Of a stretch of 64,000 nucleotides of DNA, positions 19,801 to 64,000 are shown piece by piece. Below the pieces are notes generated by a model. The model saw only the letters and a program-made list of their open reading frames with translations. It did not search any database and was not told where the DNA came from. A program made the position numbers and the translations under genes. Position 1 is the stretch's first letter. The number at the start of each line of letters is the position of its first letter. This stretch comes from Haliotis rubra (lineage: Eukaryota), in contig NW_025765789.1 of assembly GCF_003918875.1 (NCBI RefSeq), forward strand, positions 1 through 64,000, in the 5' to 3' direction.

Positions 19801-22800
19801 TGAAGCAATTTTGCCGCATAACTACTATCTACGAAATACAATCAGCGATATAATCAGAGACTGAAGTTTCTAGTGTGCAGTTAAAGTATGACCTGGTATA
19901 CGTATTTCACATTTAATTGTTCTTTAGAATCTGTAAGTACCGAAGTCTTACTTAGTACATATAATTTTGTAAATTAACCCATCGTCTTTATATTTTCTGA
20001 CTTGAGGCAGATGTTCAAAAGGACTTGGCTTCCTGCTTTGATGTGAGGTGAGATAGAAAGATGAATGCACGTGTGTATTTGTGTGCGTGCGTGTGCGTGG
20101 GGCTAGCTGACTGACCGCGCGTGGCTGCAATATTTGAACTAACATGGCTACCCAACTCAGTACACTGACTCCAAGCCATCCAGTCCATTCAAGTGCCACC
20201 AGTCATCGTGTTTTAGTAAGAAGCAGCAGGGGATCGAACCACCGAGCCTCTGCTCTCCGGGCAGACACTCTATCCACGAGACCACGGTCTACAGTGATAC
20301 ATGATACAGTCATCCACGGTACTCACCTCTATCCTTGAACGCTAAATATCCAGCTGCAAAGGCAGCAGCGGTCTCGGCAGCGACGTCGGCGCCTGGACAG
20401 GAAGTGGAGATCTTGTAGGCTGGTCTGGCCATGGTCATGTCCTCTGGGCGGCCCCAGTAGGCGTGGTCTGCGCCACCGTCACCCACCTAGAAAGTCGGGA
20501 AGGAAGGTTATATATGAGTGAGTGAGTTTAATTTTACGCCGCATTCAGCAATATTCCAGCTACATGGAGAAGGTCAGTTAATAATCGAGTCTGGACCAGA
20601 CAATCCAGTCATCAACAGCATGAGCATCGATCTACGCAACTGGGATTCGATGACATGTGTCAACCTAATCAGCAAGCCTATCCCGTTAGTCGCCTCTTAC
20701 GACAAGCATGGGTTGCTGAAGACCAATCTAACCCCGATCTTCACGGGTAGGTTATTAACGAAGCATATATAATCGTATACATTGTGTTGGTCAGGTCTAA
20801 GGAGTCCGGAAGGGCCGTCGTATGGTATCTGCAAAATGGTAAACTGTTTTATTTCTCAGAAGAATCCTCGTCTGCTATTCTAGAAGGAAAACACACCTGA
20901 ACATATAATTCGTTCTTGCTGACGTGGGCTTTCAGGAAGTAGTCGAGCGGCCATTTAACGCTGTCGTACATGAAGTCCAGCTGTTTGGCCTTCTGGTAGG
21001 CGTCCTTCCACTGGATCAGGCCCCAGAGGAGAACTGTGGTGGAGTAGGCCATAGGCAGCCCAAACTTCACATGATCACCGGCTGTAAAACACAGATACTG
21101 GCGTCAATTCAAACGTCCGTTCAGGCAAACAATATGTCCCCATAACACACTGAAACAGACCCCAGCTGGCACAACACATGGTTTGGGTCACTGTTTGATA
21201 ATTTGGGATGACAGCAGGTGTTCCACCCCACCAATATGACCCGCCACCCTCACAATAAACCAAACAAATATCTACAGAACATATTAGTGGAATATGCGGA
21301 ATGATAATCAGGACATATGAATGGCTGAGAACGTTCATAAGATTACTTCGATTGTGGGACAACTGTCTTATCATGGGTGGATCCAGGAATTTTGAACCCC
21401 CTGAACCCCCCATTGGCTCCGCCAACGCAAAAACAAAATCTTCAATGTGGTCATAAGTCATATTCAAAAGGGGGAAAGGGTGGGTGGAAGGGTGGGTGGG
21501 TTTGACCCCCCTGAACCCCCCTCTGGATCCGCCAATGCTTATACTTCGAATAATTTCTGAGTGCGGCGGAAGAGAAAACACACACAAACTATTACTGACT
21601 GACTTATGTGTCAGGTTGGGTGTATTCGGGTATAGCAGATTGTTGATAAGTCATCATATCCATATGTCTGGCTAGCGCTTTAAAAGACTTTAGCGAAATG
21701 TCAAAAATATGTTCACTCAACTGACCATCATACCATCCCCCCCCGTGAGGTCTTCTCCCCCGCTTCCCTTGTCCTTGAGGGAGGAGTCATTTCTCCATGG
21801 GATGCGGTTACTCGCCGGAAGTTTACCAGATCTCTGCGCCTCGTAGAACAGGATGGACTTCATGAGAACCTCGTCGTAGTTATACTTGGTTTGGTCAGCT
21901 GGGGACATATGAAACTCATTCCTATATTTGTCAGCAACTCCATATCCCAAACAAAACAAAATATTTGGTTACCAGCTTTCACTCCCCCCATTCCCCATAC
22001 ATAGTTCCCTTTACGTGCTACTTATTCTTTACAGTTAGCCTCAAGAGACATGATGAAACCCTTCAGACTTAGGCCTACACAATGTCACACGTATCCAACA
22101 CATCTATACAGAAAACTTACGATCCCTTGGAATCTGGACCTTGAATGGATCTTTCCCTAGGTTGGTAAATTCGGCAGATGCGCAAGGTGCTTTACTTCCT
22201 GAGTAGGAGCCGGTGACGGTTATGGACAGGGAGGACCCTTTGTTGATGATACCGTCGTACGCCTTGTTGACGATCTTGAAGTGGGTGCCGTCTGTGTTCT
22301 TTGATATCATATCACCTTGCCATTGCTGCCAGAAGAATCGTAGAGTGAGGGAGTTAGTGAGTTTAGTTTTACGCTGCATTCAGCAATATTCCAGCTATAT
22401 GGCGGCGGTCTGTAAATTACCGAGTCTGGACCAGACAGCGTAGAAAATCTAAAAGCTAGCAAGTACTGTGCCTTGTAAGAATGTCCATAAACACCAAACT
22501 ATCTGTTTCAGATAATCATAATGATTCGTACTTTATGATTCCGGTAATCATATTGATGCATACTATCTGTTTCAAATAATCATAATATGCGTACTATGAT
22601 TTGTTTCAGATAATCATAATGATACGTACTATCTGTTTCAAATAATCATACTATGCGTATTATCTGTTTAAGATAATCATAATGATGCGTACTATGATTT
22701 GTTTCAGATATTCATAATGATACGTACTATCTGTTTCAAATAATCATACTATGCGTATTATCTGTTTAAGATAATCATAATGATGCGTACTATGATTTGT

Positions 22801-61098: not shown

Positions 61099-64000
61099 AT
61101 GATGTTCCTTCTCGCGGTTCTGCTTCTCATCTCATCTGTCGTTGCCATGGATATTCCCATCACCGATCACTGGGATGGTGGTTTCAAGTCTGAGTTCTGC
61201 GAGCCTATCACTAAAAACCTGCAACACTGGACAGCTCACGCCATCTTTGACCATCACATCAATCACTTGGACGTAAGTTGTATTCCGCGTGAATGATTAA
61301 CACACGAGTGACAAAATTTAGTTTTTGAAGCCATACTACTAACCAAGTACCTGAATGCAGTAAATCTCCTTAATAGAAGGAACACAAACCATAACAGTTG
61401 CCTCAGAACGCTTTCAATTATTTGTATTGACCTTCTGAAGATGACGTGTAAGAACAGCAGAATCTCCGACGAGGAGCTCTGGTTAATCTTGTCTTCCGTT
61501 TAAGTCACGGAGAGCTGTCCTGGTTGTTGAGATCCGTCTCGTGGTGTCCTTGACAACCTACTAGGTATGTAAATATGCCCCCTGCTGTCGACTACTTTTA
61601 TGTTTCTGGCACACCAGAGCTCATTGGTGGTGGACGTACTCCAGTAGTAGACCGTACTTCGTACCTTATACCGGAAGTCCTGGTAGAGACCTAATTATGC
61701 ATGTGTTCCCAAGTAACAAAAAAGGTTGACATGTAACGTATTTTCAACTATCATACTTTTAGGTGTGGGTTGCTGAAGTTCAGAAAACTCTGAATGGCGG
61801 TAAAGAGTTTGTCCTTGTCAACAAGCAATCCTATGGTGATCAGAAGGTTGGCGACAAACTGTGCGTGAAGCTAGTTGGCCGTACGGACGGTGACATTGTA
61901 CCCAAAGGCCGGTTCTACATTGAAGGCATGGATGGGCCAGTGTCGGCCCACACACCCAATATACAGACACCCAAGCCAGGGACACCTCACACCTCTAGCC
62001 ACGTCACAGGTAAACATGGAGTGAGTTGAGTTGTAGGTTCATAGGGCACTATTTCTGCCATTTGTAAGTGGTAATACCAAGAATAGAATCCCATGCTGTA
62101 AGTGGTAATACCAAGAATAGATTCCCATGTTGTAAGTGGTAATACCAAGAATAGATTCCCATGTTGTAAGTGGTAATACCAAGAATAGATTCCCATGTTG
62201 TAAGTGGTAATACCAAGAATAGATTCCCATGTTGTAAGTGGTAATACCAAGAATAGATTCCCATGCTGTAAGTGGTAATACCAAGAATAGATTCCCATGT
62301 TGTAAGTGGTAATACCAAGAATAGATTCCCATGTTGCAAGTGGTAATACTAAGAATAGATTCCCATGTTGTAAGTGGTAATACCAAGAATAGATTTCCAT
62401 GTTGTAAGTGGTAATACCAAGAATAGATTCCCATGTTGTAAGTGGTAATACCAAGAATAGATTCCCATGTTGTAAGTGGTAATACCAAGAATAGATTCCC
62501 ATGTTGTAAGTGGTAATACCAAGAATAGATTCCCATGTTGTAAGTGGTAATACCAAGAATAGATTCCCATGTTGTAAGTGGTAATACCAAGAATAGATTC
62601 CCATGTTGTAAGTGGTAATACCAAGAATAGATTCACATGTTGTATGCCTGTGGGTGCACACTAAGGAAGATTGAATATTAAAGTGAACTACCATCTGGTG
62701 ATACGCCACTGAGTGAGTGAGGCGTTCCATGAGCTATGAAAGGTAATGTGTGCTTTATAAAGTAACGATAAGAATATTTTCTCCATGAAACAAGTATTTG
62801 CATTGCCTCCACGTGCTGTACCACTGTATTTGACCTAAATTCAGCTTCCCAGTCGTCAAAGTCTCTGACAGTATTGCCTGGTATCTAATGAGTTGACGCC
62901 ATTGCCATCTCCAGTTTTCTTATAATCGCATGCGAAAACCCTTCCCTTTAATAAAGTATACTAGTCGTTCACACCATCCATCCGTATATGGGCCATGGGG
63001 TAGCCCAGTGGTTAATACGTTCACTCGTCACGCCCACGACCCGGGTTCAATTCCCAACATGGGTCCAATGTGTGAAGCCCATTTCTGGTGTCCGTCGTCG
63101 TGATATTGCTGGAATATTGCTAAAAGTGGCGTAAAACTGAACTCACTCACTCACCCATCCGTATAAAAATACTTCATTACACATTTTCCACATACCATTG
63201 TTGTTTCCGGTAGCACCTTATAAGTTTAAACAGTTTGGATAAAAGTGATGATTTACAATGAGCCATTACATATCGTATATCATACAAAATGTGTCTTCAA
63301 GCATGACTCGGTATTAAATGAATGTCATCAAGTGAAACACTGACAGTGATTGGTGTGACACAACTATGATCTTTAATTTATCGATTCCATTTTATAAACA
63401 TGTAACATCCATGACAAATGACGTCAATAATAACGCATTTTGTCAGGGAAACAAATTACTGTGTGCATTTATATGTATCACTTAATATTGACCATAATGA
63501 TGAACCTGTCGTTCTTTCAATGTGTGGCCGAGATCAATATAAGTATCATGTTTAACTATCTATTTCAGGCAAGGTTCTGTATGCACGAAATGGGTTCGAC
63601 CCGAATGACTACAAGCATGGAATAACAGTGTTACAACACGGGAGCTTTGACGAGAACTCGGGCTCCGTTGTCCTTGACCCTACCGGTACCGGGGAACACG
63701 TCCTGAAAGTATTCTACGAGAAGGGACACTACGTCCACGTTCGGGGGCATCGAGGAATTCAATTCTACTGGACACCCATCACACCACACACGAGGCTGAC
63801 GTTGAGCTACGACATCTACTTTGACCCACATTTTGACTGGGTTAAAGGCGGCAAGCTCCCGGGTCTCTGGGGAGGCTCCCAAACCTGTTCTGGAGGACGT
63901 CACTATGAAGATTGTTTTTCGACCCGTTTCATGTGGAGGACTGGAGGAGGTGGAGAACTCTACGCCTACATCCCTACTGGACAACGTTCTGACTTTTGCA
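61099..64000 (+). CDS. Gene F: secreted CBM2-like plus PL14 alginate-lyase-like protein (3' end beyond window)
   Basis: Phase-consistent exons: 61099-61272 (signal peptide, DHWDGGF), 61763-62009 (VWVAEV..KEFVLVNK..GDKLC plus linker, ending phase 1) and 63569 to beyond 64000 (VLKVFYEKG, LSYDIYFDPHFDWVKGGKLPGLWGG, CSGGRH, CFSTRFMWR, GELYAY). The ORF track misses the last exon. Confidence 0.9.
62063..62643. repeat. 34-bp minisatellite (about 17 units) in gene F intron
   Basis: Unit TGTAAGTGGTAATACCAAGAATAGATTCCCATGT. Confidence 0.96.

Follow-up and report, generated by a model that had tools for sequence, protein, structure and literature searches.

The stretch of DNA analysed here (the window) comprises positions 1 to 64,000 of the forward strand of contig NW_025765789.1 of the abalone Haliotis rubra (RefSeq assembly GCF_003918875.1), and appears to be part of a cluster of genes for secreted polysaccharide-degrading enzymes: three GH9 cellulases (B, D and the truncated C) and two PL14 alginate lyases (E and F). 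An exact look-up of encoded proteins likewise identified Haliotis rubra, the blacklip abalone. We take B, C and D to be paralogs of the molluscan GH9 cellulases that carry an N-terminal CBM2 (abalone HdEG66 type); the relatives of E and F are presumably the gastropod PL14 alginate lyases of the abalone HdAly type. All five genes contain a module resembling a carbohydrate-binding module (CBM), once in B, E and F and twice in C and D, and each copy is encoded by two exons. From the letters of the window alone, the original prediction held that this exon pair is a plug-compatible cassette, swapped between catalytic domains by intronic recombination, plausibly through short interspersed nuclear elements (SINEs). 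The analysis reported here supports a real exon shuffle at a phase-1 boundary, placed far back in time, in a module whose divided structure was for the most part inherited.

Exon borders were recomputed by script from open frames and their flanks. All 14 module exons were recovered at the positions originally predicted, with an AG acceptor and a GT donor at every one (Table 1); first exons of the seven copies were 164-186 nucleotides (nt) long and second exons 201-265 nt. Joined modules were built by script from the window and from genomic loci, and served for alignment, local profile scoring and trees (modules are named by gene, with 1 and 2 for the first and the internal copy in C and D). 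Alignment of the seven window modules required no gap at the split; the intron fell in a single alignment column and in phase 0 in 7/7, at pairwise identities of 16-35% between types (C1/D1: 65%; C2/D2: 56%). A profile made from non-Haliotis relatives only matched all seven at E-values between 1e-36 and 4e-13 (Z = 1e6); the best of the shuffled controls (n = 1400) reached 9 bits. A length of 3n+1 nt in the second exons of B, C1, C2, D1, D2 and F places the next intron in phase 1. The predicted phase-1 start of the catalytic exons was likewise recovered, in the first GH9 exons of B, C and D (PF00759: 49-60 bits, above cut-off) and in the PL14 exons of E and F (PF21294: full-length matches above cut-off, 252 bits over profile positions 5-215 and 251 bits, respectively). 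C2 and D2 are internal copies with phase-1 introns on both sides (phase 1-1).

Gene E conforms to this pattern after correction of one nucleotide. As assembled, its second exon (E2) has a phase-0 end, and splicing to the phase-1 PL14 exon would then disrupt the reading frame. Contigs from three read runs were compared with the window (X1 and X2 judged DNA-like and X3 RNA-like, by their behaviour). DNA-like contigs of X1 and X2 carry one extra A behind position 54267, an A that is also present in E2 of a second Haliotis species; with it, E2 is 202 nt long, has a canonical GT donor and ends in phase 1, as do all other copies. Absence of the A at 54267-54268 reflects either a mistake in the assembly or a null allele. 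An RNA-like X3 contig (1016 nt, without intron depth) splices E2 to the PL14 exon. For gene F, an exact database protein of 395 amino acids (aa; P0003) covers both the junction between the two module exons, F1 and F2, and that between F2 and the PL14 exon. In the second Haliotis species the orthologs of E and F lie in tandem, with annotated products of 385 aa and 397 aa in the same order.

Table 1. Module exons of genes B to F and the catalytic exons that follow them (positions in the window).
Feature	Position	Strand	Remarks
Gene B coding exon 1	23610..23789	-	Predicted signal peptide and N-terminal CBM2 half; CAG directly before ATG; phase-0 end
Gene B CBM2 C-terminal half	22121..22325	-	205 nt; phase-1 end; CBM_2 18.9 bits
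Gene B first GH9 exon	21726..21898	-	Phase-1 start at 21898
Gene C module 1 exon a	31725..31904	-	Predicted signal peptide and N-terminal CBM2 half; CAG directly before ATG
Gene C module 1 exon b	31275..31521	-	Also encodes Thr/Pro linker; phase-1 end
Gene C internal module 2 exon a	29254..29417	-	Phase-1 start, phase-0 end
Gene C internal module 2 exon b	27778..27994	-	Phase-1 end
Gene C first GH9 exon	26601..26774	-	Phase-1 start at 26774
Gene D module 1 exon a	38130..38306	+	Predicted signal peptide and N-terminal CBM2 half; CAG directly before ATG
Gene D module 1 exon b	38517..38781	+	Also encodes Thr/Pro linker; phase-1 end
Gene D internal module 2 exon a	39507..39670	+	Phase-1 start, phase-0 end
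Gene D internal module 2 exon b	40260..40473	+	Phase-1 end
Gene D first GH9 exon	40635..40808	+	Phase-1 start; GH9 exons go on to ~47449
Gene E exon 1	52930..53115	+	Predicted signal peptide and N-terminal CBM2 half; ATG 1 nt past AG
Gene E CBM2 C-terminal half	54068..54268	+	201 nt in this assembly; phase-0 end as assembled
Gene E single PL14 catalytic exon	54888..55657	+	Phase-1 start; PL14 252 bits
Gene F exon 1	61099..61272	+	Predicted signal peptide and N-terminal CBM2 half
Gene F CBM2 C-terminal half and linker	61763..62009	+	Phase-1 end
Gene F PL14 catalytic exon	63569..64000	+	Phase-1 start; extends past the window to contig position ~64335

By profile comparison and by predicted fold, the module is a divergent animal CBM2. 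Against the Pfam model CBM_2 (PF00553, cut-off 24 bits), single exons of the window gave 18.9 bits for the second exon of B and no score for the others, and all matches in a six-frame PF00553 scan of the whole genome were below cut-off. The closest full-length relatives scored 23.2 and 21.9 bits against the same model, and many more distant full-length relatives of the module family were above its cut-off (32-119 bits). A profile of the seven second exons matched 67 proteins among 1.84 billion representatives. An alignment of natural modules with 27 rows (A3) was the basis both for a sequence-profile search, in which solved CBM2 domains were matched (2RTT: 2.8e-8; 1EXG and 6QFS: 4e-7; 6F7E: 8e-5), and for an AlphaFold2 (AF2) model of the module of F (predicted local distance difference test [pLDDT] 89.7). 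Best matches of that model in Foldseek were CBM2 domains, namely 6QFS, 3NDY_E, 2RTT, 1EXG and the CBM2b 1E5B (template modelling [TM] score 0.56-0.66). An invariant Trp (column W45) is present in 7/7 modules, while the Trp of an HW.GGF motif and the aromatic residue at an 'N..WN' site are present in some modules and lost elsewhere, including in E. As a separate observation, in four metagenome-derived multi-module proteins (P0002, P0036, P0041 and P0056) the Pfam families GD_N (the N-terminus of the serine protease gd) and CBM_2 match the same stretches, which suggests that GD_N is a CBM2-like domain.

To establish how widely the split occurs, the 1.38-Gb Haliotis rubra assembly was searched with module profiles and 30 loci were fetched for pairing of first and second exons. 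Second-exon matches numbered at least 60, nearly all adjoining GH9 exons. At the 30 fetched loci a first-exon match was found upstream of most second exons, and nearly all paired loci had GT after the last profile column and AG ahead of the first. The phase-0 split and the phase-1 end recur in at least 20 further modules of this genome. Such a search had been proposed as a way of listing other catalytic partners and their intron phases; the phase pattern recurred in the modules just counted, and the partners were nearly all GH9, with PL14 limited to E, F and a partial copy on contig C2193. The remaining PL14 genes of the genome had no module match in the whole-genome profile search. For other species, intron phases were obtained by mapping database proteins onto their own genomic loci. 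The module was split in phase 0 at the same column, and followed by a phase-1 intron, in a GH9 gene of the bivalve Mytilus trossulus, a GH5 mannanase gene of the gastropod Biomphalaria glabrata, module 2 of a GH9 gene of the gastropod Aplysia californica, and both GH9 modules of the hemichordate Ptychodera flava. Copies in phase 1-1 occur in Aplysia too, and the second Ptychodera module is also in phase 1-1. Because so many other modules share the pattern, in this genome as well as in a bivalve, two gastropods and a hemichordate, the architecture is ancestral and the seven window copies are not independent evidence of swaps. On these comparisons of sequence, the split-module architecture is at least as old as the common ancestor of molluscs and hemichordates. 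Convergent gain of an intron at one codon was considered and rejected, as the position is common to every paralog and to four other species. The conserved intron also indicates that the animal CBM2 is old and not a recent bacterial import.

Across the species examined, the partners of the module are GH9, PL14 (Haliotis and Batillaria), a GH5 mannanase (Biomphalaria) and a MAM domain (Batillaria). 'C-type lectin' proteins of Mytilus were rejected as a further partner, the module being absent from them despite a shared cluster. The start of the PL14 catalytic exon was in phase 1 and at one common position, a few codons ahead of a conserved Leu-Trp, in 9/9 examined. In a sequence scan, five of seven module-less PL14 genes had a clear candidate signal-peptide exon 150-600 nt upstream, made of an ATG, 14-18 mostly hydrophobic codons and one extra G before a GTA donor, and hence ending in phase 1. 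Given this shared phase-1 acceptor and, in most cases, a candidate phase-1 signal-peptide exon, a 5' swap to the exon pair encoding signal peptide and CBM2 keeps the frame. With borders of the same phase, unrelated partners and a recipient PL14 intron of matching phase all found, real shuffling took place at a phase-1 boundary; among the abalone genes, only the link to alginate lyases is an ancient exon shuffle. The notion of a plug-compatible cassette therefore stands as regards its fit to both GH9 and PL14, whereas a count of seven swaps for seven copies does not, as the phase pattern was inherited. In the Batillaria CBM2-MAM gene (L049:6935-13113), the linker consists of repeated exons of ~36 codons rich in Pro and Thr, and successive tblastn matches overlap by a common Gly; this points to Gly codons divided between exons and to consecutive phase 1-1 exons.

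Trees of the modules and of the PL14 domains bear on the age of the fusion. In the module tree (101 columns), a starred 'proximal' clade (support 97/95) unites B, C2 and D2 with the Mytilus GH9 module and module 2 of Aplysia; C1 and D1 lie outside both this clade and a gastropod 'distal' clade. All PL14-linked modules (E, F, those of the second Haliotis species and that of Batillaria) fall on one side of a branch with support 74/86, which was recovered in 78% of bootstrap trees and is nested in the gastropod 'distal' clade (94/97) with modules linked to GH5 mannanase and MAM. The modules of E and F are 27-35% identical to C1 and D1, F reaching 35%, and neither exceeds 50% identity to any GH9 module of the genome; the GH9 module nearest to that of F sits on another contig. 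In the PL14 tree, module-bearing genes are successive outgroups of a module-less clade (C2437/C924; 91/90 and 85/86). This topology fits one old gain of the cassette followed by loss, although it does not strongly support it. The fusion itself is present in the second Haliotis species, and a CBM2-PL14 protein also occurs in Batillaria. The CBM2-PL14 fusion accordingly predates the split of the Haliotis species and probably that between Haliotis and Batillaria, and E and F are old paralogs.

Taken together, the history that we regard as highly probable is that an ancestral two-exon CBM2 cassette was inherited by duplication and was joined to PL14 by phase-1 shuffling, most likely once. Most of the seven copies would then derive from duplication of modules and genes that carried the old structure. 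At the phase-1 boundary, a 5' cassette of start codon, signal peptide and two CBM2 exons would have come to lie in front of a PL14 catalytic exon whose phase-1 acceptor probably already existed, with a short signal-peptide exon of phase 1 ahead of it. The joining was most likely a single event, before the Haliotis species split and probably before Haliotis and Batillaria diverged, and a later loss of the cassette may account for the classical abalone alginate lyases that lack the module. Several points weigh against this history. None of the window exons, taken singly, reaches the Pfam CBM_2 cut-off, and the glycan binding of the window CBM2 modules is a prediction. The module tree is short, at 101 columns, the branch that would mark a single origin is not strongly supported (74/86), and the branch of E is long. 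The Batillaria fusion is known from protein only, with no gene record for P0011 or P0052, and the signal-peptide exons of module-less PL14 genes are candidates from a sequence scan. Finally, B and E contain frame-breaking indels in this assembly, which could be errors or null alleles.

The competing account that survives best, though it seems to us fairly unlikely, is that CBM2-PL14 arose repeatedly, separately in E, in F and in Batillaria, aided by the shared phase-1 borders. The module-bearing genes are not one group in the PL14 tree, which implies a minimum of two state changes, and the module of E is very divergent. However, the PL14-linked modules stand together in the best tree as well as in the bootstrap majority given above, and three gains require more events than one gain and one loss.

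A second account, in which the module was inserted as an internal phase 1-1 unit behind a PL14 signal-peptide exon and the intervening intron was lost later, draws on the context of the start codons. The gap from the preceding AG to the ATG measures 0 nt in genes B, C and D, against 1 nt in E and 4 nt in F, as originally predicted. A pyrimidine-rich CAG stands directly before the ATG in B, C1, D1 and one further paralog, and 4-21 nt upstream of it in other paralogs and in module-less PL14 genes. The start of F (AG, 4 nt, ATG) is nearer to that of module-less PL14 genes (AG, 4-9 nt, ATG) than to the abutting CAG and ATG of GH9 genes, as insertion behind a PL14 signal-peptide exon would have it, and phase 1-1 copies that could serve as the inserted unit do exist in C2, D2, Aplysia and Ptychodera. 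Yet the account needs intron loss as an additional step, the layout of the first exon in E and F is that of the first coding exon of GH9 genes, and their modules are of the N-terminal ('m1') type; we consider it unlikely.

The same spacing underlies the claim of a non-coding leader exon ahead of the ATG. Such an exon is likely, and the original claim remains plausible on the distance between AG and ATG, but the splice itself was not confirmed by the read-run contigs, one of which starts matching at 52929 with three unmatched letters and has three unmatched letters at its other end too. Elsewhere, the annotated coding range in Biomphalaria opens with ATGAT, followed by GTAAGT and a 5.4-kb intron; in Mytilus and Ptychodera the ATG has no AG directly before it.

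A recent local swap, in which the cassette moved between neighbouring catalytic domains by recombination of intronic SINEs, was the mechanism first proposed and now appears very unlikely. The setting is suggestive, with E and F located inside the GH9 cluster and at least 20 SINE pieces in the window, some of them in the introns B1-B2, D1a-D1b, E2-PL14 and F2-PL14. SINE 3' tails, ending in CACTCACTC repeats, abut the acceptors of B2 (22343-22437) and of the PL14 exon of E (54765-54872) as well as the AG ahead of the ATG of E (52863-52926). No shared breakpoint marked by a SINE or by a SINE pair was found among these pieces. The copies are 76-93% alike and the fusion events are far older, so that a role for SINEs is unsupported: the elements are abundant, as claimed, but none is linked to a breakpoint. 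The SINE tail at the ATG of E is, like the fusion, common to the second Haliotis species, CBM2-PL14 is found in Batillaria, and the pattern of introns and phases is older than molluscs. The distance of the E and F modules from C1 and D1, and from every GH9 module of the genome, also speaks against a local donor. That the models of E and F are artefacts, with module and PL14 exons taken from separate genes or brought together by misassembly, is hardly credible in view of the spliced RNA-like contig of E, the exact protein of F and the annotated products of the second species, even with frame-breaking indels in B and E and near-copies of the region on other contigs.

Some gene models in the window are imperfect. 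The first GH9 exon of gene B has, at 21726-21760 (-), a run of eight G where the near-identical copy on contig C380 has six, a +2 frameshift in this assembly that lies ahead of the conserved GGWYD motif and reflects either a mistake in the assembly or a broken allele. Gene C combines two modules with only the first two GH9 exons (26601-26774 and 25782-25970, both -), and the first exon of gene B begins ~2 kb beyond the last of these. Either C is a truncated duplicate, or it is an alternative 5' unit of B. Contigs C715, C380 and C2193 carry near-identical copies of B, C, D and F in a partly different order (among them L002, L005, L017 and P0068), which are either haplotigs or recent segmental duplicates.

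Other features of the window were noted in passing. Introns of the module genes hold minisatellite arrays at 22498-23451, 28599-29268, 53389-53980, 62058-62644 and 12915-17180, with periods of 32, 61, 35, 34 and 60 nt, respectively, and up to 71 copies; in gene C, the end of exon C2a and its donor site recur in the 61-nt array. Between E and F, at 57264-58436 (-), lies a single-exon open frame of 390 aa that matches rhodopsin-family seven-transmembrane (7TM) receptors at 54 bits. Upstream of E, open frames at 50375-51166 (-) encode domains like the helix-turn-helix of transposases and are probably the remnant of a Tc1/mariner-type element.

Classical exon shuffling in animal extracellular proteins involves phase 1-1 modules (Patthy's rule). 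The abalone module shares with such modules its phase-1 borders, the phase-1 ends of signal-peptide exons and its occurrence on unrelated domains. In contrast to them, it has an extra conserved internal phase-0 intron, and its N-terminal copy shares an exon with the signal peptide, so that the unit that moved was probably a 5' exon pair and not a module inserted internally. The symmetry rule for module shuffling has been summarised in work on plant-parasitic nematodes, for whose GHF5-CBM2 endoglucanases shuffling was proposed and no support found, 1-1 borders being absent or rare (PMC2633302). Those proteins are likewise animal CBM2 enzymes, whereas in the family described here phase-1 borders occur throughout and several partners are documented.

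The order of signal peptide, CBM2, linker and GH9 in B, C and D is that of molluscan CBM2-GH9 cellulases, including P0004 of Aplysia and P0047 of Mytilus. E and F share with module-less gastropod PL14 lyases the full PL14 domain and the phase-1 start of the catalytic exon, and differ from them in bearing an N-terminal CBM2. A CBM2 of Corbicula is cited in PMC11805347, and Pfam-based survey work has placed CBMs in ~8% of molluscan GH9 genes and described an expansion of PL14 in gastropods (PMC7560691); here, by comparison, nearly every module match adjoins GH9 exons. In a literature search that left subscription journals outside its reach, no paper was found on the two-exon CBM2 split, its phases or the spread of its partners, nor on a CBM attached to an animal PL14.

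For the family as a whole, the case provides a clean animal example of the phase-1 exon-shuffling rule in digestive carbohydrate enzymes, and it means that Pfam-based surveys undercount the CBMs of molluscan cellulases. A wider history can be put forward tentatively, as a possibility that we think somewhat less probable than its opposite: that the CBM2 cassette predates the protostome-deuterostome split, has been mobile at phase-1 introns, as a 5' or an internal unit, with at least four unrelated partner domains in molluscs, and was carried by an ancestor of the module-less lyases before being lost. If this is true, a cellulose-targeted alginate lyase would be the older state in animals. Judging from sequence and model, the CBM2 is predicted to tether its enzyme to cellulose or another insoluble glycan of algal cell walls, and in the lyases such tethering would put the catalytic domain beside the alginate around cellulose microfibrils. 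E and F would then represent a candidate enzyme type, an alginate lyase with a predicted cellulose-binding module, which could serve seaweed processing and may matter for how abalone open brown-algal walls.

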